IMG/VR virus record: IMGVR_UViG_3300042566_001780
Span: 227,688-291,687 of that record
Reading direction: 5' to 3' (one strand)
DNA length: 64,000 nt
Below are positions 9,988-49,336 of the stretch, in pieces. The position numbers and the translations under genes were made by a program. The notes beneath the pieces are model-generated. The model was not told the origin of the DNA. It was given only the letters and a program-made list of their open reading frames with translations, and searched no databases. The number at the start of each line of letters is the position of its first letter. The first letter of the stretch is position 1.

Positions 9988-9998
9988 AGGAAAATGTC

Positions 9999-11077: not shown

Positions 11078-11582
11078 AGTTCAAGCGCCAAATAAGTTCA
11101 AAGTTAAGATGGCACACTGGACCGTTTTTCTTGCTGGGTCCATTGAAATGGGTGCTGCTGTTAAATGGCAAAATGAAGCTGTTGAGCAACTTAAACCATA
11201 CAATGATGAGTTGGTGTTGTTCAATCCTAGACGAGATGATTGGGATTCTTCTTGGGTTCAATCGATTGATAATCCCCAATTTGCTGAGCAAGTGAATTGG
11301 GAAATTGAACACATCACTAAATCAGACATTGTGTTCTTCTATTTTGCTGGTGACACAAAATCTCCAATCACTCTAATGGAGCTCGGCATTATTGCGGGAA
11401 TGCATATGCGATATGCGACATCAGATGTCATTGTTGTTTGTGAACCAAATTTTTGGCGAAAAGGAAATGTCGACATTCTCTGTGATACAATCAATGTACC
11501 GCTTTATGATAATCTAAAAGATGGTCTAAGTCATCTTGAAAATTATCTTGTCACTAATGGTGGGTTCATTCCTGGAGCGTGA
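11070..11582 (+). CDS. Nucleoside 2-deoxyribosyltransferase-like protein
   Basis: VFLAGSI, FNPRRDDWD, QVNWE, SPITLMELG. Confidence 0.8.
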   Translation: MIEVQAPNKFKVKMAHWTVFLAGSIEMGAAVKWQNEAVEQLKPYNDELVLFNPRRDDWDSSWVQSIDNPQFAEQVNWEIEHITKSDIVFFYFAGDTKSPITLMELGIIAGMHMRYATSDVIVVCEPNFWRKGNVDILCDTINVPLYDNLKDGLSHLENYLVTNGGFIPGA

Positions 11583-31625: not shown

Positions 31626-32861
31626 ATGGCTGTACCAGTTCTAAAAGCTTTCAAATATCGAATATATCCAAATAAGGAGCAGGAGTCCTACCTGCTCCAA
31701 AATTTTGGATGTGTTCGCTTTGTTTGGAACCAGTTGGTAGCCAACTTCAATTCATTCTCAAAAGAAGGTCCAAATCGGCCAATGAATGAAAAGATATTGA
31801 AGGATAATGAACTATATCCTTGGTTAAAAGAGGCGATAAGTTATGCATTGCAGCAAAAGCGAATGGATTTTGATGAGCTGAAGAAACAGTTCTTCAATAA
31901 AGGTCGTAAAGTCAAATTAGGCAGGCCCAAATTCAAAAGACGAGGTAGAAATGAGTCATTCAGAATTCCTGCTGCTTCAATGTACCTAGAAAATTTTGAC
32001 AAAATCAAAGATGGGCGTATCAAATTGCCGAAAATGTCGCCTATGAAAATTGTCATAGATCGGCCTTTTACTGGCAAACCCAAATCGGTCACAGTCTCTA
32101 AAAATGCAAGTGGACAATATTTTGTTTCAATTTTAGTCGAAGAAGACATAGAGTTGAAACAAAATACCGGTCGCTCAATCGGTATTGATCTTGGTTTGAA
32201 AGATTTGCTCATCTTAAGTGATGGCACAAAAGTCTCCAATCCAAGATGGTTTAGAGAAAACCAATCTAAACTAAAGCGAGCACAGCAACATTTAAGTCGC
32301 AAGATAAAAGGTTCAAATAGATACAATAGGCAGAAAATCAAGGTAGCCAAAATCTACAGAGATGTGACAAATCAACGAAAGTTTGTTTATCACAACTTGT
32401 CAAGTTGGCTAGTTGATAACTATGACACTATTTGTACAGAGAACCTTAAAGTGAAGAATATGGTGAAGAATCGCAGTTTGGCAAAGTCGATACAAGATGC
32501 AAGTTGGTCTACGTTCATATCTATGTTAGATTACAAATCTCGTTGGTACGGTCGCACATTCCATAAGATAGACACCTGGTTCCCATCTAGTAAGACATGT
32601 TCTTGCTGTGGACATAAAATGGAATCGATGGATCTATCTGTGAGAGAATGGACTTGTCCATCTTGCAATACGCACCATGATCGTGACTTAAATGCAGCCA
32701 CAAACATACTAAATGAAGGTATTAAAGACCTTTATGACATGACCTCGGCTGAATTAACCGAGTACAGACGTGGAGAGGCAATAAGACCCAAGGAAGTTCT
32801 TCCAAAGGCAGCTTCAGTGAAACGTCTAGTTAGTTTTATAGATTTTTATAAAACGGCGTAA
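31626..32861 (+). CDS. tnpB: RNA-guided endonuclease TnpB
   Basis: KAFKYRIYP, RuvC motifs GIDLG / ENL / DRDLNAA intact, zinc finger CSCC..CPSC. Confidence 0.93.
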   Translation: MAVPVLKAFKYRIYPNKEQESYLLQNFGCVRFVWNQLVANFNSFSKEGPNRPMNEKILKDNELYPWLKEAISYALQQKRMDFDELKKQFFNKGRKVKLGRPKFKRRGRNESFRIPAASMYLENFDKIKDGRIKLPKMSPMKIVIDRPFTGKPKSVTVSKNASGQYFVSILVEEDIELKQNTGRSIGIDLGLKDLLILSDGTKVSNPRWFRENQSKLKRAQQHLSRKIKGSNRYNRQKIKVAKIYRDVTNQRKFVYHNLSSWLVDNYDTICTENLKVKNMVKNRSLAKSIQDASWSTFISMLDYKSRWYGRTFHKIDTWFPSSKTCSCCGHKMESMDLSVREWTCPSCNTHHDRDLNAATNILNEGIKDLYDMTSAELTEYRRGEAIRPKEVLPKAASVKRLVSFIDFYKTA

Positions 32862-32888
32862 TTATTCACCAACTTCTTTTGGAGCTCC
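32740..32888 (+). ncRNA. Putative TnpB omega-RNA scaffold plus guide (boundaries approximate)
   Basis: Hairpins CTCGG..CCGAG and GTTTTATA..TATAAAAC and an ACGT..ACGT pairing overlap the tnpB 3' end, where omega-RNAs normally lie. Confidence 0.5.
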
Positions 32889-33503
32889 TTCAAGAGAAGT
32901 TAAGTAATTGTTAGAACAATCAAAACTACCACCTACTTCTTTTGGAGCACCCTTAAGGGTTTCTAATTTGTTATATGCACAATCAAAATTACTGCCAACA
33001 AATCTAGGGCTTCCCTTAAGTGAGACTAAACTATTTCTACTACAATCGAAAATTCCTCCTACTTCTCGCGGAGCCCCAACTAATGAAGTAAGAAAGTTTC
33101 GCATGCACAAAAAATTTCTTCCTACTTCTAGCGGTCCGCCAATCAAGCTAGACAAATTATTGTATGAACAGTTGAAAATTCCATCAACTTCTTGTGGTGC
33201 TCCTTCTAAAGAAGTCAATTCATTATCGCTGCAATTGAATGATCCACCTACTTCTCTTGGTGACCCTTTTAGTGATTTGAGGTATCCACCAAAGAATCTA
33301 AATGATCCTGTAATTTTGCCAAATTGGATTGGCAAATATTCAAAATGCACATTGGATCCAAAATCAACGTCCCCATCAACATCTACAGTTAGATCACTAT
33401 TGATATGGTAATTGATGAAGCCATATTTTTGTATCCATGCTTCAACTTCTTCTCGCGTCTGAAGAAATTGAGATTGATTTTCAAATAATTGTTTTAGCTT
33501 CAT
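32862..33503 (-). CDS. 22-aa LRR protein, C-terminally truncated by IS607
   Basis: About 7 repeats, stops mid-repeat (APKEVGE*) at the IS right end; starts MKLKQLFEN. Confidence 0.8.
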   Translation of the reverse strand: MKLKQLFENQSQFLQTREEVEAWIQKYGFINYHINSDLTVDVDGDVDFGSNVHFEYLPIQFGKITGSFRFFGGYLKSLKGSPREVGGSFNCSDNELTSLEGAPQEVDGIFNCSYNNLSSLIGGPLEVGRNFLCMRNFLTSLVGAPREVGGIFDCSRNSLVSLKGSPRFVGSNFDCAYNKLETLKGAPKEVGGSFDCSNNYLTSLEGAPKEVGE

Positions 33504-34063
33504 TCTTCATTTCCAATGAACTGGCCTTCAACATGCTCTGCATCACTCATTATTTCAGCTACATCAATTTTGGTTTCATAGAAATAGACATCACCACCAA
33601 TGTGTTTGCTTATTCCATAAGATGAAGCCAAATCTCTATTTGAACTACAATCAAAATCTCCGCCAACAAATTTAGGACTTCCCTGAAGATCTGTTAATTT
33701 ATTTCTACTACACATAAATGATTTGCCGACTTCTCGTGGGGCACCTTTTAGGCGATACAGACTATTGCTAGATGCATTAAAAGATCCGCCCACTTCTCTG
33801 GGTGATCCTTCCAGCGAAGTTAATCCAAATCGTGTGCATGAAAAACCACCGGTCACAGTTCTCCATCTAAATGGAAAATTATCTTGTGGATTCAGCAATG
33901 GAATGAAAGTTACATTTCCATCAACGCTAACTGAGAAATCTTCATGAATTTCATAGGATCCGTCGACTAGAACAACCCGTCTAGATTTGATTAAGTCATC
34001 TATCTCTTCTTTTGTCTGAAGAAATTGAAGATTAGTATTTTCAAATAATTGTTTTAGCTTCAT
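33500..34063 (-). CDS. 22-aa LRR protein
   Basis: LTSLEGSPREVGGSF repeats; first codons (MKLKQLFEN) shared with the neighbouring gene. Confidence 0.8.
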   Translation of the reverse strand: MKLKQLFENTNLQFLQTKEEIDDLIKSRRVVLVDGSYEIHEDFSVSVDGNVTFIPLLNPQDNFPFRWRTVTGGFSCTRFGLTSLEGSPREVGGSFNASSNSLYRLKGAPREVGKSFMCSRNKLTDLQGSPKFVGGDFDCSSNRDLASSYGISKHIGGDVYFYETKIDVAEIMSDAEHVEGQFIGNEE

Positions 34064-35894: not shown

Positions 35895-36080
35895 ATGCGC
35901 AACACTCTCCTCTTAATTATTACTGTTTGCACTATCGTGGGTGCACTTATTGGTCATGCATTCAGCTATCCCATTTTGGGTGCTATTTTTGGGTTCATGG
36001 CACTTCCTTTTGTGATAGGATCTATTGTGGTCGGCATTGCATGCATCATCAACTCATTTTCCAAAATTTTCAATCTATGA
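35895..36080 (+). CDS. Small membrane protein
   Basis: Two hydrophobic segments; ATGA overlap with the next gene. Confidence 0.55.
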   Translation: MRNTLLLIITVCTIVGALIGHAFSYPILGAIFGFMALPFVIGSIVVGIACIINSFSKIFNL

Positions 36081-36532
36081 GATTCTACTCACTTGTCAAT
36101 TATTACCTGTCTGATCTCCAGCGAGGGCTTCAGACTGCTCATGCAGTGTCTGAAATGTTAGTGGATCCTAAAAACTGCAAGGCAAAATTGCAGCACTATC
36201 ATCAATGGGCAAAAGATCATAAGACTATCATTATTCTGAATGGTGGCAATTCAAAGATGCTGCAGGAAAGCTATGATAATCTTTCTATTTGGTGTACTGC
36301 AGCGGGTTTGCCTATCACAAAATTCCATGAAGATGAGCAAAGCTTGAATTGCGCGTTAACTTGTGTAGGCCTGGTGTTGCCTGAAGAAATTTATGGTGCA
36401 AAACGTGCTTCAAATGATTTCATTAGTCATTATGAATTTAGAAATGCTGATGGCATTTGGATGAAAAATTATTATCCTGCAGAACCAGCATACCAAATTC
36501 TGGAAATCCTCAACAAATTCAAACTTGCGTAA
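36077..36532 (+). CDS. Peptidyl-tRNA hydrolase type 2 (PTH2)-like protein
   Basis: GLQTAHAV, W...KTIIIL, F.ED.....LTCVG pattern; ATG 36077. Confidence 0.55.
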   Translation: MRFYSLVNYYLSDLQRGLQTAHAVSEMLVDPKNCKAKLQHYHQWAKDHKTIIILNGGNSKMLQESYDNLSIWCTAAGLPITKFHEDEQSLNCALTCVGLVLPEEIYGAKRASNDFISHYEFRNADGIWMKNYYPAEPAYQILEILNKFKLA

Positions 36533-36544
36533 CAAGGAAAACAA

Positions 36545-37579
36545 ATGTCAAAAATTCTGATTACCGGCATGAATAAGCTTCAATGCACTGAAGACTTTTA
36601 TCTTGACCAACATTTGAAAGTCGTCCCGTCGCATTACTCTCTCATTCGCGCTCTTCGAGATATGGGGCATACTGTTGAGCAACGAATTGTGATGATAGGC
36701 GAAAATCTATCTGAATACGATCATGTAATTGTGTATATCCATAATCCTGCAGGGTTTGCCGGATTTGTATACAATGCCCTGTATACCATTTACACCCGGC
36801 CTGATTGCATTTTGGCATTTGATGATTGGCAAGTTGATAGCATTTATTCTGGTCTACTGTCTCTGAAAGATCCAGAAAAACTGTTTCGATCGTATGTTAA
36901 GGATGGGCATAAACACATTCCCGATCATATTGAAGATTACGAATCAATGATGATGAAAGCGCTCGACATCATTGATTCAAAAACTAACCGAATGATGATT
37001 TCGGCTTTTGCTGGCGGTGATCTTTCTAAGTTGATCGAATATCCAAGTAATCGCATTTTTAGTTATAATCCCAACCCGTATCATTTGAATCGACAGGGTG
37101 TCAAAGTAATCCCTGAAAATAAACAGAAAGTCTTTAACTTTGCTGGGCTGGTACAGGGCAAAACCGCCAGGTGGCTCAAATCCCAAAAGATTGGTGACAC
37201 TGGCTGGGATCTAAAAATGTATGGTTCCCGTAAAGATGGCCAAGACCGCGTCACTGAAGATGTGATGGTGAATATCTATGGGGAGCAATGGGGCATTTTA
37301 ATGCCGGGATATTTCCATGCCGGGTCGGGGTGGTGGAGGGCCCGTCCCCTACAGTCAGCCGATGCTGGTTCTATTTTGATTGGTGAATTTGCTGAAATGA
37401 TGGTTCTTTACCAAGATGAAGGTGCTGCTACGGTAAAGCCAGTTGATCTGATTAATCTTTCTACTAACGAACTTGCAGAGATTGCTGCTTATCAAAAAGA
37501 ATGCCTGTACAAAGCACATCCTTTGGATAAGAATGTCGAAAAAGAAGAACTCAATACCATTTTGAAGGCAGTAGTGTAA
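36545..37579 (+). CDS. Putative glycosyltransferase (GT-B-like), candidate nucleotide/DNA-modifying enzyme
   Basis: KILITG N-terminal strand, FNFAG, W+G.LMP.Y....SGWWRAR..Q..DAGSILI resembling a GT-B C-terminal domain; first gene of a sugar-nucleotide operon. Confidence 0.5.
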   Translation: MSKILITGMNKLQCTEDFYLDQHLKVVPSHYSLIRALRDMGHTVEQRIVMIGENLSEYDHVIVYIHNPAGFAGFVYNALYTIYTRPDCILAFDDWQVDSIYSGLLSLKDPEKLFRSYVKDGHKHIPDHIEDYESMMMKALDIIDSKTNRMMISAFAGGDLSKLIEYPSNRIFSYNPNPYHLNRQGVKVIPENKQKVFNFAGLVQGKTARWLKSQKIGDTGWDLKMYGSRKDGQDRVTEDVMVNIYGEQWGILMPGYFHAGSGWWRARPLQSADAGSILIGEFAEMMVLYQDEGAATVKPVDLINLSTNELAEIAAYQKECLYKAHPLDKNVEKEELNTILKAVV

Positions 37580-38593
37580 ATGAAAATTCTAGTTGTCGGC
37601 GCTGGTTTTTCTGGTGCGGTTATTGCTCGTGAACTGGCAGAAGCAGGTCATAATATTACTGTCATTGACAAGCGGGGTCATATTGCAGGAAATGCATTTG
37701 ACTTTAAAAATGACTATGGCATTCGTGTGCACAAGTATGGGCCTCATCTTTTTCATACAAATAATGAAACAGTGTTTGCCTATCTTAGCAAATTTACAAC
37801 ATGGATCCCGTATGAGCATAAAGTAAAAGCTATGTTAGCAGATGGCAGATATGTTACATTGCCCGTGAATAAAGAAACTGCTGAGATTGTAGGAAAAGAA
37901 AACATTGTCGATATTTTTATTCGCCCATATACTAAAAAAATGTGGGGGATGAGTATTGAGGAACTTGATCCTGAGATTCTACAGCGAGTTCCTATTCGTG
38001 ACGATATGAATGACAAATACTTTCCAAATGATCAATTCCAGTTTATGCCAGAAAATGGATATACTGAACTAATTAGGCAAATGCTACATCACGAAAATAT
38101 TTCTGTGCTGTTGGGCAAACCTTTTAGCAAGAAGTTGGAAGATGAATTTGATCACATCTTCAATTCAATGCCAATCGATGAGTATTACGATTTTTGTTAT
38201 GGCGAACTGCCATATCGATCTATCAAGTTTCATACTGTGGACCTCCCTGCTCCTAAGCTTTTGCCAACAACTACAGTAAACTTCACTCACAGCGGACCTT
38301 ATACTCGAGTTACTGAGTGGAAGAACATTCCAGGTCATGGAACAAATGATCAAATGACAACCTTAACTTTTGAGGAACCATGCGATTATTTGGACAATAA
38401 TAAAGAACGGTACTATCCGGTCAAAGATGCCTCTGGGAAAAATAGAGAAATCTATAAAAAGTATGAAGGTATTCTGAACGCGAAGACTACCTTTATTGGT
38501 AGATGCGGACTTTATGCTTACTTAGATATGCACATGGCAGTCAGTACCGCTTACTCCATTGCTAAACGATTTTTGAAAGAGCGAAATGGCTGA
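37580..38593 (+). CDS. glf: UDP-galactopyranose mutase family flavoenzyme
   Basis: VVGAGFSG, HKYGPHLFHT, YTKKMWG, LPYRS, YTRVTEWK, YYP, GRCGLYAYLDM. Confidence 0.9.
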   Translation: MKILVVGAGFSGAVIARELAEAGHNITVIDKRGHIAGNAFDFKNDYGIRVHKYGPHLFHTNNETVFAYLSKFTTWIPYEHKVKAMLADGRYVTLPVNKETAEIVGKENIVDIFIRPYTKKMWGMSIEELDPEILQRVPIRDDMNDKYFPNDQFQFMPENGYTELIRQMLHHENISVLLGKPFSKKLEDEFDHIFNSMPIDEYYDFCYGELPYRSIKFHTVDLPAPKLLPTTTVNFTHSGPYTRVTEWKNIPGHGTNDQMTTLTFEEPCDYLDNNKERYYPVKDASGKNREIYKKYEGILNAKTTFIGRCGLYAYLDMHMAVSTAYSIAKRFLKERNG

Positions 38594-38873
38594 TTTTATT
38601 CTGGTAGCGCAATCATTTCATAAAAATGCAGCAATTGCAGAAGTGCTAAATAAACGTGCAAAAGATGATCGAGTGATTGTTGTCACGAACAAAGAAGACG
38701 ATTCTAAATGGGAAGTTTTCTTTGAGCGTGTTTGTAAATGCTCAGTCTATCAATTCAGTCTTAGTGAAGAACTTCCGAAAACTCTGGAAGAAGCTTCTAA
38801 AAAGCTGAAAGACTTTCATCCCACGCAATTCACCCTAAACCAAGAATGTGTTTTTCTATATGATCCTGAATGA
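38586..38873 (+). CDS. Hypothetical protein in the sugar operon
   Basis: Overlaps both neighbours. Confidence 0.55.
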   Translation: MADFILVAQSFHKNAAIAEVLNKRAKDDRVIVVTNKEDDSKWEVFFERVCKCSVYQFSLSEELPKTLEEASKKLKDFHPTQFTLNQECVFLYDPE

Positions 38874-39327
38874 ATTGAAAAAACTGCAAGGCAAAAAAAT
38901 TGGATTTGTAGCAAGTTGTTTTGACTTGCTGCACGCAGGTCATGTAGCCATGCTTAGTGAAGCAAAGAATCATTGTGATTTTTTGATTGCTGCATTGCAA
39001 GTAGATCCGTGTGTTGATCGGCCACACAAAAATAAGCCAGTACAAAGCATAGTTGAGCGGCAACTACAGCTAGCATCATGTAGATTTGTGGATGACATCA
39101 TCATTTACCATACAGAAAAGGATCTAGAAGATCTTCTGCTGATTCTGCCTATAGATGTGCGTATTCTCGGCGTCGAATATCAGGATCTAGAATTCACCGG
39201 TAGACAAATTTGCATTGATCACGGAATTGAGCTTGTTTTCAATTCGCGAAATCATTCTTTTAGTTCAAGCGGTTTGCGGAAGCGTGTGCTTGAAGCTGAG
39301 CAAAAAGCTGCGACAAAAGTAGATTAA
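38860..39327 (+). CDS. Cytidylyltransferase (TagD/RfaE-II-like HxGH nucleotidyltransferase)
   Basis: CFDLLHAGH, KPVQSIVER, RNHSFSSSGLR. Confidence 0.87.
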   Translation: MILNELKKLQGKKIGFVASCFDLLHAGHVAMLSEAKNHCDFLIAALQVDPCVDRPHKNKPVQSIVERQLQLASCRFVDDIIIYHTEKDLEDLLLILPIDVRILGVEYQDLEFTGRQICIDHGIELVFNSRNHSFSSSGLRKRVLEAEQKAATKVD

Positions 39328-41161: not shown

Positions 41162-41629
41162 ATGTCTTCTATTATTGAAGTTTCTGGTAATCTTTTAGAC
41201 ATAACTTCAGGCATGATCATTCACGGTTGCAATGCTCAAGGAGTAATGGGCTCTGGAATAGCGCTGCAACTTAAGAATAAGTACCCAGGGATGTTTTCTA
41301 CATATGTCAATGATGTTAACTTATGGTCTCAAAAAGGGACCCGGAGACATGATTGTTTAGGTGCAGTGTCTTGGCATATTGAAGGCGATCTTGTCATTGG
41401 AAGTTGCATCACACAGCTTTTCTATGGAAAAGACGGTGCAAAGTATGTGTCTTATGATGCTGTTGATTCATGCGCTATGGATGTGAATGCTATGTTGAAA
41501 TCTGGTGAATTTGCTGAGTTGCATATTCCAAAAATAGGAGCAGGACTAGGAGGTGGTAGTTGGAGTGTCATTAGTGAAATTTTGACACATCGTATCGAAG
41601 TACCTATTATTTGTTGGGTGAAAGAATGA
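41162..41629 (+). CDS. Macro domain protein (ADP-ribose processing)
   Basis: IIHGCNAQGVMGSGIA and PKIGAGLGGG.W. Confidence 0.88.
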   Translation: MSSIIEVSGNLLDITSGMIIHGCNAQGVMGSGIALQLKNKYPGMFSTYVNDVNLWSQKGTRRHDCLGAVSWHIEGDLVIGSCITQLFYGKDGAKYVSYDAVDSCAMDVNAMLKSGEFAELHIPKIGAGLGGGSWSVISEILTHRIEVPIICWVKE

Positions 41630-42967
41630 AACCAATAGCTTATAGATTCCAAATCAAATCTGGTGATTCATGGCAAACTTATCATGCTTCAAATTTGCCA
41701 AAGAATGTCATTCTCAGCAATGTTGTGCCATTATTTGAAAAACCTGTATTTGATCAAGCTTTTCTGAGAACGGTGTTTGAATCTAGTTTGAATTTCAATG
41801 ATTTCTATTCTCAGTTATGTAGCATTCAAATAATGGATCAAGAGCCAGGGGACATCGTGAATAGGCTACTTGCTAGAGCAGCTATTCGAAGGCAAATTTC
41901 TTCAAGAAAAAGCGTTGAGCTCAATGAAAAAGATCGTATTGCAGATCTTCTTGAGGAAGCAGCACATGAAATTATGAAGTTAAGAGGAAAATGACATGAG
42001 CAACAGCCTATCGGCTTTTTTAAAAGATCTTGCGGACTACACAAAAAGATTTATTTTCATGGGCAACAGCGATTATGCAAAGCAAATTATTGAATCAATC
42101 GAAGAACTAAAAAGCCAAGTTGTAGCTCTTTCTAAGCCGAGCCTATTTGCAATTTGCAAACTAAAAGTAGAAAATTCTGCTCAAGAAAAACAAGCATTTG
42201 AGTCGTGGGTGAAGTCAGTTTCGGGAGAAAGTGCTGATTTTTCAACAGATGAAACTGGAAATTATCAGCATCCCGAAATGTATGCTGCTTGGTTAGCGTG
42301 GAACGCAAGAGTGACACAGCAAAACTATGTTAAAATTCCCTATGCAAAGCTAAAGCTTAAATCCATTGACAATGGAATGCCGGACTGCCCGCATTGCGGA
42401 AACAATCGTCAAGTTTGGCGAAATCAGATTACGAACAAGCTCACATGTCACCGTGCATATTGCAACACTGTCATTGAAGAAATGGAAACAAAATGATCAA
42501 GTCTTTTACTCTGAAGCAAATTCCTTCCCATGTTGATCTGGAGCCAGGTGTTACGGTCTACGAGTCTGCTAAGTACGATTATGGTTTGGCAAGTGATGAC
42601 AGTCGATTCACCGGCATTCATCATGTTTCAGTGACTCTTGATCCAACTGGTGACTATCCATTTTTTACGGTTCCTGCACATTTCTTGGAGCCGATTGAGA
42701 ATGTCACAACCTAATTGCCTGCATATTCTTCAGGTTGGCAGATCTTTTGTGGCACTCAAAGATAGTGCTTCTGCAAATCGCTATATAGACCATTATGGAC
42801 TGTCAAAACAAGCAGTCCATCTTGGATGCAAAGAAGTCCATCAATCCTACATTGACATTTTTGAAAAGTGTAAAGTTGATAGAATTGGCTTTGAGCATCT
42901 AGGTCTTTTGCTGCAACCCTCATTTACACCGTTTTTCAAACATGTCCCAACAACCAAAAGTAACTGA
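41626..42967 (+). other. Four small hypothetical ORFs (41626-41994, 41996-42496, 42493-42714, 42701-42967)
   Basis: Coupled ORFs; 41996 ends in a CPHC..C....C zinc ribbon. Confidence 0.55.
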
Positions 42968-44714
42968 CTACGCCGTTCTTGATGAGATTGAACACGTACG
43001 CCGTCGTACTGGCATGTACGCGGGTTCTACTGAACTGCAAACAGCTTCGGACTGGATTTATGATCCTAATCTAAAGAAGATGGTCAAGAAGCAGGTGAGT
43101 TACATTCCTGCTCTTATCAAAATTTTCTCAGAAATTCTCGATAATGCAATCGATGAACACCGTCGTGCTCCAAACGTGCTTGATGCTATTCGGGTAGATT
43201 TCACTGCAGAAGGCATTATCACAATCACTGATAATGGTCGCGGTATTCCAGTTGAAGTCCATCCGCAAACTGGAAAATATATTGCAGAAACTGTGTTCAC
43301 GACGCTGCGTGCAGGTTCTAACTTTGACGATACAAAAGATCAACAACTTGTTGGCACCAATGGCGTTGGTAGTACACTGACATCTATCTTGTCTACCATG
43401 TTTCGCATCGAATCATGTGATGGCAAGAAGGTGTACACGCAAGAATTTAGAAATGGTCTTCGGGAGCGTGATGAACCGAAGATCAAATCTGACAACAAGA
43501 ATCGTACGAAAATTACATTCAAGCCAGATTACGAATTCTTCAAGTTGAAAGGTTTGGACGCCGATCATGCAATGAAGATGACCAAGAAGATTGCAGATGC
43601 CGCTGCATGTAACCCGGGTGTAAAGTTCTACATTAACGGTGATCGAATTGCTGTTAAGGATTTTGGTGACTACATTTCACTATACACTGATGAGTTTGTG
43701 TATGACGATACTCCTGATTGGAAGGTTGGCATCTCTCATTCTGATGGATTTGAGCAAATTAGCTTTGTCAACTCGGTTGAAACATACCAAGGTGGTACAC
43801 ATGTAGCATACGTAATGGATCAAATTGTTGAAGCCATTCGAGCATATATCAAGAAAAAACATAAGGTAGAAGTAAAGCCTGCTGACATCCGCAATCATAT
43901 GCGGGTGTATATTAGTGCCAACGTGAATCGGCCTAAGTTTTCTTCTCAAACAAAAGAGAATATGATTTCTCAATATGGAACTTACAAGACTTCTTGGGAA
44001 GTTCCTGATAAGATGATTCAGAAGCTGCTGAAGTCGCCAATTATTCAATCTGTGCTTGATTGGGTAGAAGCGAAGCAGAAAGCTGCAGAACTTGCAGAAT
44101 TGCGTAAACTCAACAAAGAAGCGGCAAAAGCAAATCCGCGTCGAGTTGAAAAGTTTGATGACGCCATTGAAAAAGTCAATAGGCACCAGTGCCAGATTTT
44201 TTTTACGGAGGGGGACTGCCTTTTTGAGGACACTTTGATTTATTCTCAAGGCAATGGGAATATTAAAATTAAAGATTTGCAAATAGGTGATTTTGTCCTA
44301 ACTCACCAAAACAATTTCAAACAAATAGTTAACAAAACTACTAAGTTAAAAGAGTGTATAAAATTTTGTCTGGAGGATAATAAAATTTTAATTTGTTCAA
44401 AAGAACATAAAATGTTATGTTATTCTAGAAATGACAAATGTTTTGGCTGGGCAACAGCTGAATACATAGCAAATAATCTAGATTCTTTCTATTTGGTAGA
44501 AAATGAGATAATTTCCAAAAGATGCATGGGGGACGAGCTAATAAGTAAGAACCTCCATGATAACGAATTTATTTTAGAATTTGGCAGTGGCCAAACATGG
44601 GAATCTTCACCCAACCACAGGTGGATGGTTTATCAATTAAAAACAAATAGTTTTGTAGTAGTGTCTACAGAAGATATGGAACTTGGCGATATGTTGTTAA
44701 TGAGTATGTCATAA
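42942..44714 (+). CDS. DNA topoisomerase II large subunit, fragment 1 (GHKL ATPase + start of TOPRIM) fused to N-intein
   Basis: EHVRRRTGMYAGS, EILDNAIDE, DNGRGIP, GTNGVG, FFTEGD|CLFEDT (intein Cys1 at 44217). Confidence 0.93.
   Translation: MSQQPKVTDYAVLDEIEHVRRRTGMYAGSTELQTASDWIYDPNLKKMVKKQVSYIPALIKIFSEILDNAIDEHRRAPNVLDAIRVDFTAEGIITITDNGRGIPVEVHPQTGKYIAETVFTTLRAGSNFDDTKDQQLVGTNGVGSTLTSILSTMFRIESCDGKKVYTQEFRNGLRERDEPKIKSDNKNRTKITFKPDYEFFKLKGLDADHAMKMTKKIADAAACNPGVKFYINGDRIAVKDFGDYISLYTDEFVYDDTPDWKVGISHSDGFEQISFVNSVETYQGGTHVAYVMDQIVEAIRAYIKKKHKVEVKPADIRNHMRVYISANVNRPKFSSQTKENMISQYGTYKTSWEVPDKMIQKLLKSPIIQSVLDWVEAKQKAAELAELRKLNKEAAKANPRRVEKFDDAIEKVNRHQCQIFFTEGDCLFEDTLIYSQGNGNIKIKDLQIGDFVLTHQNNFKQIVNKTTKLKECIKFCLEDNKILICSKEHKMLCYSRNDKCFGWATAEYIANNLDSFYLVENEIISKRCMGDELISKNLHDNEFILEFGSGQTWESSPNHRWMVYQLKTNSFVVVSTEDMELGDMLLMSMS
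44217..44711 (+). mobile_element. Split intein, N-terminal half (165 aa)
   Basis: CL..DT.I, IKIKDLQIGDFV, block-B-like S.EH / S..NH motifs, then a stop codon. Confidence 0.88.
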
Positions 44715-44722
44715 AAATAGCG

Positions 44723-44779
44723 CATTTTTTGTCTCCTTCTATAAATATGAATATATTTTACTGAAGGAGACAAAAAATG
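44723..44779 (+). promoter_or_regulatory. Late promoter TATAAATA (44740-44747) inside a 17-bp inverted repeat that masks the endonuclease RBS and ATG
   Basis: CATTTTTTGTCTCCTTC (44723-44739) is the exact reverse complement of GAAGGAGACAAAAAATG (44763-44779). Confidence 0.85.
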
Positions 44780-45886
44780 TCCATGAAACATAACTTTACT
44801 TTTATTGATACCGATCTTCAAAATCCAATTAATTTTGGAATTAATGAAATTACCCAAAAGAATTTAAACAAATCTATATCTTCCAAGTTTAAAAGAATTC
44901 TTAAAAAAGACTTTATTGATTTTCTATTAGCAAAAGTACCTATAGATAAAAAAATATTTTGCAATTGGTGCGGGCGGCCAAATGTAACATGTAAAGGCAT
45001 TTATGGTATAGATTTTTCTAATATGACAGTATCTCTTATGGATATTGAATACTCCAAAAAGTTACACTGTTGTTATGGAACCACAGAATGTCAAAGTAAA
45101 AAATTAAACCCTAATTCTATAGAATTTGTTTCTAAATCAAGAAATTTGTCATTAGAAGAGGCGCGCGAATACATTCTGAATAGAAATAAATCTCCATTCT
45201 ACAGCAGAAATCATAAAACTTTAGATGATTACAAAAAATATCAAGGATCTAGATGCTTTTCAGATGATGTAGAAAGAAATAAAGAGATAATTAATAAACA
45301 AAATTTTTCAAGAAGTTTAGATGGATTTAAGGAAAAATATGGTCCTATTGAAGGACAACAAAAATATGATCTATATCAATCCAAAAAAGCCATAACTTTA
45401 GAAAATCTTATTAAAAAGTATGATGATCCAAAAGTTGCAGAAGAAAAACTTTTATCTTGGAAAAGATCAACATCTTTGACATTGGAAAATTGTATTAGAA
45501 GACATGGACCAGTAGAAGGGCCTAAGTACTATAAAAAATCCGTTGAAAATGGCGGGCTATATAGTACAATAACTTTTGCATATGACGGGTCTGCGTTAAG
45601 GAGTAATAATGAAAGAAAGTTTTATGAATTACTGCTAGTTGCAGGTATCCCTAAAGAAGAAATATTGATAGATAATTGCTATCCAGAAAGTGCATTGCGA
45701 TATGATTTTTTTATAAAATGCTTAGGCATTTTTATAGAGATAGCTGGTATGAATGATGATCAATATAACGAGAAAATGATTCTAAAAAATAAAATATTCA
45801 ATGCATGGATAGTAAGACCGTTAGAGATTGATAAAGCAGCAACTAAAATAATAGAGTATTACAATTTTTTAAAAGAAGAGAAATGA
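44777..45886 (+). CDS. Free-standing putative homing endonuclease (C-terminal PD-(D/E)XK-like domain)
   Basis: Very AT-rich; KYG..EG..KY repeats; C-terminal RS..E...YDF....IFIE..G; lies between the intein halves. Confidence 0.72.
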   Translation: MSMKHNFTFIDTDLQNPINFGINEITQKNLNKSISSKFKRILKKDFIDFLLAKVPIDKKIFCNWCGRPNVTCKGIYGIDFSNMTVSLMDIEYSKKLHCCYGTTECQSKKLNPNSIEFVSKSRNLSLEEAREYILNRNKSPFYSRNHKTLDDYKKYQGSRCFSDDVERNKEIINKQNFSRSLDGFKEKYGPIEGQQKYDLYQSKKAITLENLIKKYDDPKVAEEKLLSWKRSTSLTLENCIRRHGPVEGPKYYKKSVENGGLYSTITFAYDGSALRSNNERKFYELLLVAGIPKEEILIDNCYPESALRYDFFIKCLGIFIEIAGMNDDQYNEKMILKNKIFNAWIVRPLEIDKAATKIIEYYNFLKEEK

Positions 45887-45887
45887 T

Positions 45888-46331
45888 ATGTTTGAGAAAC
45901 TTCTGGATGATTTTGAAACTATTGGGAAAAGATTGGTCAAAATTAATGCTGTAGACTTTGCAGGTCTTGCCAATACAGTTGATATTGAGGTTGAAGATGA
46001 TAATTCATTTACCCTATCAAACGGCCTCATTTCTCATAATTCTGCCCGCTCTTCCATTCAGGCTGCTCGCGGTAAAAACAAGTTTATTGGATCTTTTTCT
46101 CTTCGGGGCAAGCCGCTTAATGTATATGATGCCGAAATTAAGGATGTGATTGCAAATGCTGAATTTGCAAACATGCTTGCTGTTACAGGATTGCAACTTG
46201 GAGAAAAAGTTGAAGCTGAGTCTGATGGAAATTGGCACATCATTGAAATTGACGGTAAAGACGTATTGGTTAATGAAAATGATTTTATTAACATTAACGG
46301 TGATCTTATTAAGGTTAAAAATTTGATCTAG
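45888..46331 (+). CDS. C-intein (51 aa) + topoisomerase II large subunit, fragment 2
   Basis: VDIEVEDDNSFTLSNGLISHN|SARS (Ser+1 at 46041), then LRGKPLNV...TGLQLGE. Confidence 0.92.
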   Translation: MFEKLLDDFETIGKRLVKINAVDFAGLANTVDIEVEDDNSFTLSNGLISHNSARSSIQAARGKNKFIGSFSLRGKPLNVYDAEIKDVIANAEFANMLAVTGLQLGEKVEAESDGNWHIIEIDGKDVLVNENDFININGDLIKVKNLI

Positions 46332-46373
46332 ACTTTGACGGTTATTGCTAAATACATTTTTGAAAGGATAAAA

Positions 46374-47423
46374 ATGAAATGTACTTTATGCAATAATGAA
46401 ATACCAAGCATCTATAAAAATAGAATTGCATGTTGTATTAGTCCGTGTGAGTCATTTTTCATAAAACCAAGAACAATATTATGGAAAATAAAAGTATTGG
46501 GCTTCAATGAACAAAAAGTCCTAGATGAAAACCGTAAAAGAACGCAAAAAGCTGGAAATACGAGAAAATCATTGGGGCTTTCTAAAGGTGCAAATAATCC
46601 AAATAGCAAACAATATTTGTTAAATCTAGGTAAGAGTGAAGATGAAATAGCACAATTTCATAAATCTACTGCCAAAAAAATGGTGGATACAAAAATAAAA
46701 GATGACTTTTATAAGGTAAAATCTAATAATCCATATTCTTATGAATACTGGATATCTCGCGGATATTCAAATGAAGAAGCTAAAAATAAAATAAGATCTA
46801 AAAATCATAATTGTGCCGAATACTGGATATCTCGCGGATATTCAAATGAAGAAGCTAAAAAACTAAGTTCAGAAAGTGCTGATACTAATTCATTAAAAGC
46901 AAAAATCAAAAGACATAAAAATGAAGGTCATAAAAAATATATGGAAACAAAAAATAAAATGTCTGGTAGTTGGAATCCAAAATCTGCAAATAGTGTTAGT
47001 TTTTCATCTTCACAATCAGCAAATGCCTTTTTTAAGAAAATATATAAATTTGTTAGGCGGTTGGGTTTCACTAGACATGAGATGACGTTTAAATTAAATT
47101 TCGGTAAAGAATTTTGGATTAAAAAAGATAAAAAAATTTATTTTTATGATTTTGTTTTGCACCCCCTAAGATTGATAGTAGAATTCAACGGCGAACATGT
47201 TCATGTTGATCCTGGTTTATCTTTAGAAGAAAAATTAAAATGGAAACACGCGTTTTCTAAAATGGATGCTTTTAGTATTGAAGAATATGATAAGCAAAAA
47301 AATATAGCAGCTGCTGCTAGAGGGTATAAAATAATTTATGTCTGGTATAAAGATCAGGAATCTGGATTTAATTCTATTGTTGATTTTTTAAAGGAAAAAT
47401 ATAATCATGGTACAAAAGATTAA
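46374..47423 (+). CDS. Free-standing putative homing endonuclease (Vsr/DUF559-like C-terminus)
   Basis: YDF......IVEFNGEHVH ... D..K...A...GY.IIYVW; YW.SRGYS.EEAK repeats; CTAAATA at 46348-46354. Confidence 0.75.
   Translation: MKCTLCNNEIPSIYKNRIACCISPCESFFIKPRTILWKIKVLGFNEQKVLDENRKRTQKAGNTRKSLGLSKGANNPNSKQYLLNLGKSEDEIAQFHKSTAKKMVDTKIKDDFYKVKSNNPYSYEYWISRGYSNEEAKNKIRSKNHNCAEYWISRGYSNEEAKKLSSESADTNSLKAKIKRHKNEGHKKYMETKNKMSGSWNPKSANSVSFSSSQSANAFFKKIYKFVRRLGFTRHEMTFKLNFGKEFWIKKDKKIYFYDFVLHPLRLIVEFNGEHVHVDPGLSLEEKLKWKHAFSKMDAFSIEEYDKQKNIAAAARGYKIIYVWYKDQESGFNSIVDFLKEKYNHGTKD
46743..46861 (+). repeat. 44-bp perfect direct repeat (46743-46786, 46818-46861)
   Basis: GAATACTGGATATCTCGCGGATATTCAAATGAAGAAGCTAAAAA twice, encoding EYWISRGYSNEEAK. 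Confidence 0.9.
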
Positions 47424-47990
47424 AGTTAAAGCAAAAAATGTTAAGCCAACTCCCGATCAACTGCGAACTTATGTTCAGCAACAAGGACGTTTGACGACTC
47501 GAAATACGAATTTGCGTTTTGGTAAACTGATTGTGCTATCAGACCAAGACCTTGATGGATAGCTTCGGCTATCCATATTACATACACATTTAAAGAGTTA
47601 TTTGGATTTCATGTTTCTTCACTGCTGCTTTCCTTTTGGGCGAAGTACTGGCCAGAGTTGTTCAAACTCGGCATGGTATATCGGATGAACACTCCGCTTT
47701 ATATTGTCAAAACCAATAAGGGCGAACTTTTAGAATTCTTCACTGAAGAAGATTATGAGCGCTGGGCAGCAAAGGGTATCAAACATAAAGCTGACTATTA
47801 CAAAGGTCTTGGCGGTTTTGATACGGAAACTTTTGAGCGATTTATTGAGAATCTTGATAAGTATCTTGTTAAAATTACAGAGCTTGAAGCCCAAGACCTT
47901 GCAAAAATTGAGCTAGCTTTCTCTAACAAAGAGCAAGATGCTCGCAAAGAGTGGCTTGAGGATATTCGATACTTTGAAATTGAAGATTGA
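47407..47990 (+). CDS. Topoisomerase II large subunit, fragment 3 (T4 gp60-like), decoded by a 47-nt translational bypass: join(47407..47559,47607..47990)
   Basis: MVQKIKVKAK...LRFGKLIVLSDQDLDG-TAG, resuming in another frame as FHVSSLLLSFWAKYWPELF...YYKGLG...RKEWL. This restores the DxDxDGxH TOPRIM motif. Confidence 0.9.
47555..47606 (+). promoter_or_regulatory. Ribosome bypass signal (take-off hairpin, coding gap, mini-SD, landing codon)
   Basis: ATGGATAGC-TTCG-GCTATCCAT stem-loop; GAG 47595-47597; GGA 47604-47606. Confidence 0.88.
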
Positions 47991-47995
47991 AAATT

Positions 47996-49336
47996 ATGCT
48001 AAAAACAGAATCAACTGCAACAGAATTTATTGACGAAAAGCTTCGTCTTTACTCTGCTCACTCCAACATTCGAGGTATACCATTTATTGGAGACGGCTTC
48101 AAACAAGCTCACCGAAAGGCTGTTTGGGGTATGCTTAAACGTGGTGAAAATGCCGACAAAGATACTATTGAAAGAATTTCCGCAAGGTCCGCCAGTGACA
48201 CAAACTACGCGCATGGCGTAGGCTCACTTGAAGGCACAATGGTTGGACTGGCGCAGGATTATGCTGGCAGCAACAATATTCCATTGTTTGAAAAGTTTGG
48301 TCAATTTGGTGATCGTCTCAACAAAAAGCCTGCAGCCTCTCGCTACATTAAAGCAAAGCTTGCACCTTACTTTCGTCAGCTTTTCCGCAAAGAAGATGAT
48401 CTCATTTTCGAGTTCATGACTTCAAATGGAATGGAAGTTGAGCCAAAATACTTTACTCCTCTTTTGCCACTTGTTCTGGTAAACGGAGCTGAAGGTATGG
48501 GTACAGGTCATAGCACCTATATTATGGCCTATAATCCAGAAGAGATTAAAACCAACATCATTAAGCTGCTTGATGGCAAGAAACTTAAACCCAACACAAT
48601 GCTTCCATGGTGGAAGGGGTTTAATGGTTCTGTTAGCCGTAATCCAGAAACTAGTCAACTTGAAATTACAGGTTGTTACAACATTAAGGATGGGCGTACA
48701 CCAATTTTGACTGTTACTGAGCTTCCTATCGGCATCCAAAGTGATCAATACAAAGCTCATTTGGACAAGCTTGAAGATCGTGGAATTATTCTCAGTTACG
48801 ATAATCTTTCTGACAAGCGCGGTTTTGAATTCGTTATTCGGATTCCAAAATCCACTGCAGAAAAAACTGATGAAGAAATTAAAAAGCTCTTCAAACTGGC
48901 ATCAAAAGAAACAGAGAACTTGACTGTTTGGGATGGTGATGGTGTCCTTAAACGGTATGAAAATGTCGAGTCACTTCTTGAAGAATGGGTTGAATGGCGT
49001 GTTGCGCGATTTGAGGATCGTCGCCAAGCTCTAATGAAAAAGACCAAAGAAGACATTCTTTGGGCAAGTGAAAAATACAAGTTCATTATTTTCTATCTGA
49101 AGAATGTCAACTTCTTCCGTGATAATGAAACTAAAGTAATTGTTGAGAGGCTTCAAACTGAAGGTTTTACCCGCATTGAAGATCTTCTAAGCATGCCAAT
49201 GCGATCACTCACTAAGCAAAAGATTGAAGAACTCAAGAATGAAGTTGAAAAACTGAAAGTCATTTTGAATGATCTTGAAAATGACAATGCAACTTCAATG
49301 TTTAAACGAGATCTCAAAGAGTTGAAAATAGCATGA
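47996..49336 (+). CDS. DNA topoisomerase II medium subunit (T4 gp52/GyrA-like)
   Basis: DGFKQAHRK, YAHG..SL, AASRYI (catalytic Tyr), LVNGAEGMGTG, ELPIG. Confidence 0.93.
   Translation: MLKTESTATEFIDEKLRLYSAHSNIRGIPFIGDGFKQAHRKAVWGMLKRGENADKDTIERISARSASDTNYAHGVGSLEGTMVGLAQDYAGSNNIPLFEKFGQFGDRLNKKPAASRYIKAKLAPYFRQLFRKEDDLIFEFMTSNGMEVEPKYFTPLLPLVLVNGAEGMGTGHSTYIMAYNPEEIKTNIIKLLDGKKLKPNTMLPWWKGFNGSVSRNPETSQLEITGCYNIKDGRTPILTVTELPIGIQSDQYKAHLDKLEDRGIILSYDNLSDKRGFEFVIRIPKSTAEKTDEEIKKLFKLASKETENLTVWDGDGVLKRYENVESLLEEWVEWRVARFEDRRQALMKKTKEDILWASEKYKFIIFYLKNVNFFRDNETKVIVERLQTEGFTRIEDLLSMPMRSLTKQKIEELKNEVEKLKVILNDLENDNATSMFKRDLKELKIA

Follow-up and report, generated by a model that had tools for sequence, protein, structure and literature searches.

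A giant lake-water phage (IMG/VR record IMGVR_UViG_3300042566_001780) carries a tightly coupled pair of genes, encoding a predicted and previously unrecognised DNA sugar-transferase (ORF1) and a sugar-ring-contracting mutase (Glf), that most likely decorates its hydroxymethylcytosine (hmC) DNA with galactofuranose (Galf), presumably to escape host nucleases. We found no report of the predicted product, galactofuranosyl-hmC in DNA. This is a strong prediction from comparative genomics and structure modelling rather than from chemical or read-level evidence, all sequencing runs being kept only as assembled contigs. The genes lie in the window, a stretch of 64,000 nucleotides (positions 227,688 to 291,687 of the record), and their coordinates are given in Table 1.

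Table 1 Features of the window discussed in the text (coordinates are those of the window)
Feature	Coordinates	Strand	Length	Assignment
ORF1	36545-37579	+	344 aa	GT-B glycosyltransferase of an uncharacterised family (phrog_14998); predicted DNA hmC glycosyltransferase and probable galactofuranosyltransferase
Glf	37580-38593	+	337 aa	FAD-dependent UDP-galactopyranose mutase; predicted to convert host UDP-Galp to UDP-Galf
p95	38586-38873	+	95 aa	Lineage-specific ORFan between Glf and the nucleotidyltransferase; probably not a core component
NT	38860-39327 (ORF from 38848, 159 aa)	+	155 aa	HIGH-motif (HxGH) nucleotidyltransferase; accessory gene
TS2	5214-6194 (ORF from 5193)	+		Thymidylate-synthase-family dCMP hydroxymethylase (gp42/MilA-like); predicted source of 5-hydroxymethyl-dCMP
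Kinase	9430-9987	+		P-loop nucleotide kinase, thymidylate-kinase-like; candidate kinase for the modified dCMP (weak assignment)
ThyA	50918-51748			Separate canonical ThyA

A preliminary description of the window had proposed a coupled operon of a GT-B-like protein, a UDP-galactopyranose-mutase-family enzyme, an unknown 95-aa protein and an HxGH nucleotidyltransferase, with a gp42-like thymidylate synthase (TS) homologue and an atypical dNMP kinase elsewhere, and this observation was confirmed. ORF1 is preceded by an AAGGA Shine-Dalgarno sequence and joined to Glf by TAAATG, Glf and p95 overlap by 8 nt, and p95 and NT overlap by 14-26 nt, depending on the start of NT, for which the later ATG is more likely, as in the database entry P0272. 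Three independent metagenomes carry the same stretch, and one contig piece in run X3 spans the Glf end, p95 (unchanged) and most of NT with one difference. Of 29 strain variants in ORF1, 26 are synonymous. A promoter and terminator scan found no more sites than chance would give (20 promoter-like sites against 21.3 expected), and a megablast of the operon against isolated phages returned no match.

ORF1 has no Pfam or NCBIfam hit, but its AF2 model is of high confidence (pLDDT 96.1, pTM 0.93) and has a GT-B fold of two Rossmann domains. Two independent structure searches ranked T4 beta-glucosyltransferase (BGT) first, with Foldseek giving 1j39 as the top hit (E 8.6e-7, TM 0.59) and VIA-align giving Z 17.3 over 288 residues, rank 1 of 48,161 chains. 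T4 AGT also scored highly (Z 16.2), although generic GT-B enzymes scored only slightly lower (Z 13-16). The similarity to BGT is structural only. hhalign gave a probability of 34% over 73 N-terminal columns, the ORF1 profile found nothing in T4, and no PF09198 match was found in the genome, while the T4 control scored 1e-99. Likewise, the ORF1 profile found no relative in RB69 or, at E <= 1, in RL38J1. The family has a near-invariant D94-W95 in the N-domain, a possible equivalent of the BGT catalytic base Asp100. These data indicate that ORF1 shares the fold of BGT without being a sequence member of its family.

The ORF1 family is large (493 clusters at 50% identity) and uncharacterised. The preliminary description had named co-occurrence across phages as a check, and we examined the surroundings of 64 unique ORF1-family loci. 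Among the 46 with at least 3 kb upstream, 36 have a TS within 2.4 kb upstream of ORF1 (median 1081 nt), usually in the form MazG-TS-dCMP deaminase-(epimerase)-ORF1-(Glf), where the epimerase is GalE-like. All 35 readable linked TS carry the full gp42 signature. T4 has the same order, gene 42 followed by beta-gt, and in RB69 gp48 is followed by its transferase. In the complete genome of phage C48C1 there is no ThyA-family gene, and ORF1 is instead overlapped upstream by a TET/JBP dioxygenase. Elsewhere, ORF1 domains are fused to C5-cytosine DNA methyltransferase (C5-MT), with or without UDG domains. Aeromonas phage 25 and Erwinia FBB1, which are cultured phages, carry ORF1-Glf plus a gp42-type TS and no BGT or AGT, and phage 25 was noted in 2010 to lack any known glucosyltransferase (PMC2993671). 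Six ThyX-type contigs, the only ones that share NT with the window, show no hydroxymethylase in their flanks, but these contigs are 21-28% complete and the result does not cover the whole 142-kb record. A conserved 339-aa gene upstream in the ThyX-type loci was considered as a cryptic base-modifying enzyme and rejected, since it is a gp61-type primase.

Glf matches PF03275 (2e-54; 184.8 bits, cut-off 26.3) and the N-terminal FAD-binding domain PF13450 (65.8 bits). Its score against TIGR00031 (270.4 bits) is below the equivalog cut-off of 303.75, the match being split in two by a deletion of about 30 aa in the helical domain. The D. radiodurans and K. pneumoniae UGMs matched at 4e-77 and 2e-67, and the flavin and UDP-Galp contact motifs of solved UGMs (GPHxFHT, the Tyr/Trp pair, the mobile-loop Arg, PYTR, YYP and GRxxxYxYxDM) are identical in alignments to 3hdq and 1wam. 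Glf adjoins ORF1 in 37 of 57 loci. This linkage needs only two changes on the ORF1 tree, and the window sits in the Glf-linked part. However, two ORF1 clades lack Glf, so that the family does not strictly need UDP-Galf and the donor is assigned by adjacency alone.

TS2 matches PF00303 (1e-28) and, among solved structures, MilA (8e-32) and T4 gp42 (5e-19). It has the catalytic Cys, an Asp at E. coli position N177 (cytosine type), an Asp at L143 as in gp42, and Ser167 and Arg126, the determinants of deoxyribose preference (PMC5175136). Moreover, it keeps Asp at position 169 (MRSND), whereas RB69 gp48, the 5-hydroxy-dCMP synthase used as control, has Asn (MRSQN; signature from PMC13326640). These residues indicate a dCMP hydroxymethylase of the gp42 type. 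The genome also encodes a MazG-like pyrophosphatase and a dCMP deaminase, but no T4-type transferase and no GalE, so that host UDP-Galp must be assumed. No TET/JBP or C5-MT was found in it, the TET search having no positive control. The kinase matches phrog_761 thymidylate kinase (1.9e-11) without a Pfam hit, is not detectably related to the RB69 cluster kinase RB69p045 (BLASTP E 0.83), and lies in a nucleotide-metabolism block with a guanylate kinase and a PF15891 protein.

The other two genes of the operon are less consistent partners. NT matches PF01467 (3.8e-8; 34.1 bits, cut-off 21), its HAGH and C-terminal SSS..R motifs are invariant in 19 homologues, and its AF2 model (pLDDT 84) has a Rossmann-like fold. 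It belongs to the HIGH-motif class (HldE domain II, TagD, ECT, RibL). Scores against substrate-defined subfamilies were below their cut-offs for both rfaE_dom_II (1.7e-21; 76.5 bits against 181.5) and TagD (2.6e-12; 47 bits against 165.4). The PDB matches were ECT (1e-15) and TagD (1e-8), and the nearest reviewed proteins by structure were HldE C-domains (E ~3e-11), with the FAD synthase RibL at rank 14 (1.6e-10). NT thus resembles an FAD synthase as closely as a heptose-1-P adenylyltransferase, and it may activate a sugar-1-phosphate or a phospho-alcohol, or adenylylate FMN to supply FAD to Glf. It accompanies ORF1-Glf in only 7 of 57 loci (it was seen after Glf in the loci numbered L006, L019-L021 and L065-L068), and its ~70%-identical relatives sit elsewhere in other jumbo phages. 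A search of 5.8 billion proteins for p95 found only itself. It has no family hit, the atlas leads (CARF/HFX_2341_N-like, score 0.86) are below the reliable range, and it is absent from all related loci, where Glf is followed directly by NT.

Taken together, sequence and model show that ORF1 is a GT-B glycosyltransferase, that Glf is an intact UDP-galactopyranose mutase, and that the genome encodes a dCMP-hydroxymethylase-type TS, a MazG-like dNTP pyrophosphatase and a dCMP deaminase, while the pathway that joins them, including the activity of ORF1 on hmC in duplex DNA, is inferred. In this pathway, dCTP is hydrolysed to dCMP, and TS2 converts dCMP to 5-hydroxymethyl-dCMP, which is phosphorylated and polymerised into phage DNA. 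Glf contracts host UDP-galactopyranose to UDP-galactofuranose, and ORF1 then transfers the galactofuranosyl group onto the hydroxymethyl oxygen of hmC, as T4 BGT does with glucose. The product would be 5-(galactofuranosyloxymethyl)cytosine, which would shield the DNA from restriction and CRISPR nucleases. NT would be an accessory gene, possibly supplying FAD to the flavoenzyme Glf or making a further activated substituent, and p95 a lineage-specific insertion. We consider this explanation more likely than not, although TS2 lies 31 kb from the operon and the genome has a second, 1105-aa multi-GT enzyme that could use UDP-Galf. The preliminary description, in which the phage activates a sugar, converts it to the furanose and transfers it to 5-hydroxy(methyl)cytosine to give a galactofuranosyl- or arabinofuranosyl-C, is partly supported. 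Its core idea of a mutase-dependent DNA-hypermodification module is well supported, but the predicted acceptor is hmC rather than 5-hydroxy-C, a sugar-activating role of NT as the source of the UDP-hexose donor is not supported, and p95 is an ORFan rather than a conserved component.

Among the alternatives, the least unlikely is that ORF1 glycosylates hmC in DNA with a pyranose hexose (UDP-Glc or UDP-Galp), while UDP-Galf is used by a different transferase, either as a second sugar on the DNA or for another glycan. The two clades without adjacent Glf (28 or more loci) keep the TS linkage, a phrog_1574-like, weakly GT-like protein lies 1.2-3 kb downstream of ORF1 in 52 loci with a homologous domain in the 1105-aa enzyme of the window's genome, and di- and tri-saccharide DNA modifications made by successive transferases are known (PMC13326640, PMC8256090). 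However, ORF1 and Glf are immediately adjacent or overlapping in every Glf-positive locus, including phages without the phrog_1574 neighbour (phage 25, FBB1, C48C1, the ThyX type and the window), and in Lactobacillus phage ATCCB the only GT between the TS and Glf is a BGT homologue. It is similarly unlikely that the operon does not act on DNA but makes Galf-containing glycans on virion proteins or the host surface, as an auxiliary metabolic or superinfection-exclusion function. Phage Glf has been read as a host cell-wall gene (PMC6630229), and the genome encodes a GT1-GT2-FkbM methyltransferase enzyme among collagen-like tail-fibre and lectin-domain genes, so that glycan synthesis for virion parts is plausible. 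The lack of a nearby hydroxymethylase in the ThyX-type relatives and the nearly equal scores of GT-B enzymes with non-DNA acceptors also fit this reading. It does not explain, however, the near-constant position of ORF1 directly after a gp42-type TS, the TET/JBP neighbour in C48C1 or the fusions to C5-MT and UDG domains, and the operon is 47 kb from the structural-region GT and sits among replication and nucleotide-metabolism genes.

Two further readings, both raised in the preliminary description, are very unlikely. In the first, the product is an arabinofuranosyl cytosine, UDP-L-arabinopyranose being contracted by the mutase and transferred. Pentosylated cytosines exist in RB69, DLP3 and Thanatos (PMC13326640, PMC12838424), bacterial UGMs can interconvert UDP-L-Arap and UDP-L-Araf, and a GalE-like epimerase could act on UDP-xylose. 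However, the characterised phage arabinose is D-Araf, made through arabinose-5-P isomerase, a phosphatase and a kinase/uridylyltransferase without a mutase (PMC13326640), and none of those genes is in the operon. In addition, the residues that bind UDP-Galp are fully conserved, the relatives' modules carry a GalE-like epimerase, and UDP-Glc and UDP-Gal are universal host metabolites, whereas UDP-Xyl and UDP-L-Ara are not. A 5-hydroxy-C acceptor, as in RB69, DLP3 and RL38J1, is suggested by RL38J1, the only described phage system with a Glf, which uses a 5hodCMP synthase, but TS2 and all 35 linked TS keep Asp at the diagnostic position.

Compared with the T4 gene 42/BGT system, the module has a dCMP hydroxymethylase of the same active-site type, the same gene order in relatives and a presumed post-replicative transfer from a UDP-sugar to hmC in DNA, but its predicted donor is UDP-Galf made by a phage mutase rather than host UDP-glucose, and its dCTPase is MazG-like rather than gp56-like. 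In Rhizobium phage RL38J1 (Pootjesviridae), which has hexosylated 5-hydroxycytosine, a Glf (33% identical) is proposed to feed DNA glycosylation with galactose as the base-proximal sugar, and a TS-family enzyme makes the acceptor nucleotide (PMC13326640). There, however, the TS is a D169N 5hodCMP synthase, the transferases are unrelated to ORF1 and Glf lies far from the TS/GT cluster, whereas here Glf is translationally coupled to the transferase. RB69 and DLP3, with poly-arabinofuranosyl-5-hydroxycytosine, likewise have a furanose on C5-modified cytosine in a large myovirus and GT-B transferases next to the TS homologue, but the sugar is a pentose in an ether link to 5hoC, the TS is D169N and there is no ORF1 homologue (PMC13326640). 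The phage C5-MT/TET/glycosyltransferase clusters (Burke et al. 2021, PMC8256090) follow the same logic as the C48C1 and C5-MT-fused members, in which a hydroxymethyl handle is made on DNA and then glycosylated, while the window's genome uses the nucleotide-level route. The characterised GTs of those clusters used UDP-Glc or UDP-GlcNAc and rejected UDP-Gal. In phage ATCCB, whose cluster is annotated but uncharacterised, a gp42-type TS, a glycosyltransferase and Glf are consecutive genes forming the same functional triad, but the transferase is a true BGT-family member (PF09198 9e-22) unrelated in sequence to ORF1 (hhalign probability 1%). The pairing of a DNA transferase with Glf therefore seems to have arisen at least twice.

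In a broader reading, which we regard as about as likely as not, ORF1 defines a large, previously unrecognised family of DNA glycosyltransferases spread through freshwater T4-like phages, cultured Aeromonas and Erwinia phages, a Kyanoviridae phage and this jumbo phage. The family would work on hydroxymethyl-pyrimidines however they are made (gp42-type TS, TET/JBP or C5-MT routes), and in its Glf-linked members it would install Galf, giving the first hexofuranosyl-hmC base in any DNA. Glycosylated hmC is the classic phage counter-defence, yet many phages that make hmC have had no recognisable transferase, and Aeromonas phages 25, 31 and 44RR have been noted as such since 2010. Our analysis supplies a candidate, a widespread transferase family that standard annotation misses, together with a predicted new DNA base. 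If confirmed, it would offer a new enzyme pair for labelling 5hmC with a non-mammalian sugar and give annotation pipelines a new marker for hypermodified genomes, which are prone to sequencing and cloning bias. It would also extend the chemistry of natural DNA and explain restriction and CRISPR resistance in abundant freshwater phages.

The 64-kb stretch is the end of a 291,687-bp virus record from lake water (GC 39.7%, estimated 82% complete). The preliminary description had placed a coupled operon of four genes here, and four plus-strand ORFs lie exactly at those positions, so its observation held. The four genes are tightly coupled: the ORF1 stop abuts the Glf start (TAAATG), Glf and the 95-aa ORF overlap by 8 nt, the 95-aa ORF overlaps the nucleotidyltransferase, and an AAGGA Shine-Dalgarno precedes ORF1. 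Searches against Pfam and NCBIfam confirmed Glf (PF03275, 2e-54) and the HxGH nucleotidyltransferase (PF01467, 3.8e-8), but assigned no family to ORF1 or to the 95-aa protein. The stretch recurs in three independent metagenomes, and 26 of 29 strain variants in ORF1 are synonymous, indicating that the genes are real and under purifying selection. A promoter and terminator scan gave no more sites than expected by chance. The gene directly upstream of ORF1, separated from it by 12 nt, belongs to phrog_3668 ("hydrolase", 2.8e-34) and has no Pfam family. It may be co-transcribed with the operon, and half of its strain variants (3 of 6) are non-synonymous. The positions of the features discussed here are collected in the table.

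Positions of the features discussed in the text
Feature	Location	Strand
TS2, divergent thymidylate-synthase-family gene	window 5214-6194	
PF15891 protein, with neighbouring genes	window 11070-11582, with 9984-11077	+
Acb3 homologue	window 12062-12895	+
Protein with Lar domain	window 23141-23779 (GC peak 22001-24000)	+
TnpB/IS605 OrfB-type protein	window 31626-32861 (low-GC stretch 30-34 kb)	+
Tandem repeat protein, first copy	window 32862-33503	-
Tandem repeat protein, second copy	window 33500-34063	-
phrog_3668 protein upstream of ORF1	window 36077-36532	+
Nucleotidyltransferase, likely start codon	window ATG 38860	+
Macro-domain protein	window 41162-41629	+
GyrB/topoisomerase II large-subunit gene	window 42942-44714	+
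AT-rich region following GyrB	window 44001-48000	
Canonical ThyA	window 50918-51748	
1105-aa multidomain enzyme, outside the window	G000:C1:216681-219998 (locus L117:8682-11999)	+
TET/JBP dioxygenase, ORF1 homologue and Glf of phage C48C1 (OQ984149.1)	locus L001:4580-8027	
phrog_1574-family protein downstream of ORF1, example	locus L004:10307-11257	
Nucleotidyltransferase homologue in a ~316-kb jumbo-phage contig	locus L063:5172-7049	
Fusion of an ORF1-family domain to a C5-cytosine DNA methyltransferase domain	locus L123:2010-5123	
Gp42-type TS, BGT-family transferase and Glf of Lactobacillus phage ATCCB (MK504445.1)	locus L124:2837-5892	

The genome encodes two thymidylate-synthase-family proteins, a canonical ThyA and the divergent TS2, and the latter suggests a T4-style supply of hydroxymethyl-C. 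TS2 is closest to MilA (8e-32) and T4 gp42 (5e-19), and it has the catalytic Cys, Asp at the E. coli Asn177 position (cytosine specificity), Asp retained at position 169 and Asp at position 143 as in gp42. The published signature of 5-hydroxy-dCMP synthases is D169N (PMC13326640), which was seen in RB69 gp48, used here as a positive control, but not in TS2. Moreover, the residues that make MilA prefer ribo-CMP (Ala176, Lys133) are Ser and Arg in TS2, as in deoxy-specific enzymes (PMC5175136). Elsewhere the genome encodes a dCMP deaminase and a MazG-like pyrophosphatase (1.7e-52 to the one in the environmental gene clusters considered below), whereas no T4 gp56, GalE-like epimerase, ThyX, C5-methyltransferase, BGT or AGT was found in it. 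In addition, a nucleoside 2-deoxyribosyltransferase-like protein (PF15891, 7.7e-30) sits next to a guanylate kinase and a YqeY-like protein, 5 kb from the MilA-like TS2. The hmCMP N-glycosidase MilB belongs to this superfamily, so the protein may be a nucleotide-pool-editing hydrolase.

ORF1 is predicted to be a GT-B glycosyltransferase nearest in fold to the T4 DNA glucosyltransferases. A 68-sequence alignment gave a model with pLDDT 96.1 and pTM 0.93, and D94 and W95 are candidates for the catalytic base and base-flipping residue. A Foldseek search of the PDB with this model ranked T4 beta-glucosyltransferase (BGT) first (E 8.6e-7) and also found T4 alpha-glucosyltransferase (AGT), and an independent search of 48,161 chains again ranked BGT first (Z 17.3) and AGT third (Z 16.2), with generic GT-B enzymes at Z 13-16. 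At the sequence level, however, the relation is not established, since hhalign gave a probability of 34% over the N-terminus only. The family profile also detected nothing in T4, RB69 or RL38J1 at E <= 1, while it recovered the copy of Aeromonas phage 25 at 3e-81. The family is large, with 693 hits and 493 clusters at 50% identity, and it is annotated only as hypothetical in phrog_14998 and BFVD.

Genomic context ties the ORF1 family to C5-hydroxymethyl pyrimidines in DNA. Two scans of viral contigs, together with isolates and assemblies, gave 64 unique loci. Of the 46 loci with at least 3 kb of upstream sequence, 36 have a TS homologue within 2.4 kb upstream (median 1081 nt), and the typical order is MazG, TS, dCMP deaminase, (epimerase), ORF1, (Glf). 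All 35 readable TS have the complete gp42 signature. In T4 gene 42 is immediately followed by beta-gt, and in RB69 gp48 is followed by its transferase. Therefore, ORF1 holds the positional slot of the DNA transferase. In one clade (several of loci L089-L106, for example L093) the order is TS, deaminase, ORF1, Glf and then a C5-MT-like gene, an unexplained companion in a phage that would already make hmC at the nucleotide level.

The loci that depart from this arrangement are also informative. Aeromonas phage 25 and Erwinia FBB1 carry Glf-ORF1 beside motA, with a gp42-type TS elsewhere and no BGT or AGT, and phage 25 was singled out in 2010 as encoding genes 42 and 56 but no glucosyltransferase (PMC2993671). 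The cultured Aeromonas phages Aes508 and phiAS4 also carry ORF1-Glf plus a gp42-type TS. Phage C48C1, a complete genome of the Kyanoviridae, has no ThyA-family gene and no C5-MT. Its TET/JBP dioxygenase (PF12851, 3.3e-17), ORF1 homologue and Glf are consecutive, overlapping genes, the dioxygenase gene overlapping the ORF1 start. Such a dioxygenase is the other known route to hydroxymethyl-pyrimidines in DNA. Its substrate here could be either thymine, as for base J, or host-methylated cytosine. In many larger proteins, including the database entries P0162, P0163, P0166, P0170, P0178, P0202, P0211 and P0224, the ORF1-family domain is a C-terminal fusion to a C5-cytosine DNA methyltransferase domain. 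P0202 and P0224 also have a UDG-superfamily domain, and P0178 and P0224 carry LAGLIDADG inteins, but the only genomic context retrieved for these fusions was a 5-kb contig. In other loci a C5-MT-like gene follows ORF1. Phage C5-MT/TET/GT clusters that glycosylate 5hmC have been demonstrated experimentally (PMC8256090). Six contigs with the order primase, ThyX, epimerase, ORF1, Glf and nucleotidyltransferase remain as unresolved exceptions, being 21-28% complete or not covered whole by the search.

For the sugar donor, Glf matches solved mutases strongly (D. radiodurans, 4e-77) and keeps their flavin and UDP-Galp contact motifs, but it is about 30 residues shorter in the helical domain and falls below the NCBIfam equivalog cut-off. 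Glf adjoins ORF1 in 37 of the 57 loci with enough downstream sequence. On the ORF1 tree the Glf label needs two changes, the deepest branches are all Glf-linked, and the window lies within the Glf-linked part. Many relatives add a GalE-like epimerase just upstream of ORF1, which completes a predicted route from UDP-Glc through UDP-Galp to UDP-Galf. In contrast, the phage studied here lacks the epimerase and would have to draw on host UDP-Galp. Lactobacillus phage ATCCB, a Gram-positive phage, independently has consecutive genes for a gp42-type TS, a true BGT-family transferase (PF09198, 9e-22) and Glf, suggesting a Galf-hmC-type modification there too. Its transferase is unrelated in sequence to ORF1, and the pairing of a predicted hmC-DNA transferase with a mutase therefore seems to have been assembled at least twice. 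In RL38J1 a phage Glf was recently proposed to feed galactosylation of 5-hydroxy-C (PMC13326640), whereas our literature search found no report of a furanosyl hexose on hmC.

The nucleotidyltransferase belongs to the HIGH-motif class, with the HAGH and C-terminal SSS..R motifs invariant. By sequence it is nearest to ethanolamine-phosphate and glycerol-3-phosphate cytidylyltransferases and to HldE domain II, all below the family cut-offs, and its model matches HldE adenylyltransferase domains (E ~3e-11) and the archaeal FAD synthase RibL (1.6e-10) about equally. It follows Glf only in the ThyX-type loci and in the window (7 of 57). Its ~70%-identical relatives sit in other jumbo phages away from any Glf, and in one of them, a ~316-kb contig, the close homologue lies between GTP cyclohydrolase I and a PTPS/QueD-like gene, near an epimerase and a CTP_transf-cupin fusion, which hints at a role in a different nucleotide or cofactor pathway. 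In the present operon it could supply FAD for the flavoenzyme Glf, activate a sugar-1-phosphate, or make a CDP-alcohol for further decoration. The 95-aa protein has no relative among 5.8 billion sequences and is absent from every related module, indicating a lineage-specific insertion.

A homologue of the CBASS inhibitor Acb3 (PF25187, 5.9e-56) is another counter-defence gene in this phage, and a macro-domain protein (PF01661, 2.3e-5; phrog_335 "phosphatase", 9e-36) 2 kb downstream of the operon may be an ADP-ribose-processing counter-defence gene. A protein with a Lar restriction-alleviation domain (PF14354, 1e-6) lies in the only GC-rich stretch of the window (0.505 against about 0.40). A TnpB/IS605 OrfB-type protein with a Cas12f1-like TNB domain, in a low-GC stretch (GC 0.36-0.38), represents a mobile element inside the phage genome. 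It is followed by two tandem paralogous proteins built of about 20-aa repeats (G-A/S-P-x-E-V-G-G-x-F-x-C-S-x-N-x-L-T-S-L) without a Pfam family, which look like leucine-rich-repeat-type proteins. The GyrB/topoisomerase II large-subunit gene runs into an intein-like sequence (C-terminal part beginning CLFEDT...) and is followed by a markedly AT-rich region (GC 0.31-0.33), probably an intein or homing-endonuclease insertion.

Two alternative explanations remain alive, namely that ORF1 transfers a pyranose while Galf goes elsewhere, or that the operon serves non-DNA glycans. The genome carries a second glycosyltransferase, the 1105-aa protein about 8 kb before the window, with Glycos_transf_1 (GT1), Glycos_transf_2 (GT2), phrog_1574-like and FkbM methyltransferase domains. 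It lies among collagen-repeat tail-fibre, decoration-like and Laminin_G_3 lectin-domain genes, looks like a virion-glycan synthesis enzyme and could consume UDP-Galf for such a glycan. Moreover, a phrog_1574-family protein of about 290-316 aa, weakly similar to a phage glycosyltransferase PHROG, lies 1.2-3.0 kb downstream of ORF1 in 52 loci, including nearly all TS-linked loci. It could be a second transferase of these clusters or merely conserved T4-like synteny, so a second sugar-adding step cannot be excluded. However, neither alternative explains the TS, TET and C5-MT linkage of the ORF1 family, nor its invariable adjacency to Glf wherever Glf is present.

The preliminary description had interpreted the four genes as an operon that activates a sugar, converts it to the furanose and transfers it to 5-hydroxy(methyl)cytosine, giving a galactofuranosyl- or arabinofuranosyl-C. 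This interpretation was partly supported, being right in its core but in need of refinement. The gene order, family assignments, residue signatures and linkage counts come from the sequences, and the fold of ORF1 from a predicted model, whereas everything about the chemistry, including the acceptor, the donor and the transfer itself, is inference. The nucleotidyltransferase and the ORFan are not established parts of the pathway. On this evidence, the inferred acceptor is hmC rather than hoC, and the sugar is most likely galactofuranose rather than arabinose. The predicted transferase belongs to a new, widespread family that is BGT-like in fold but not in sequence.
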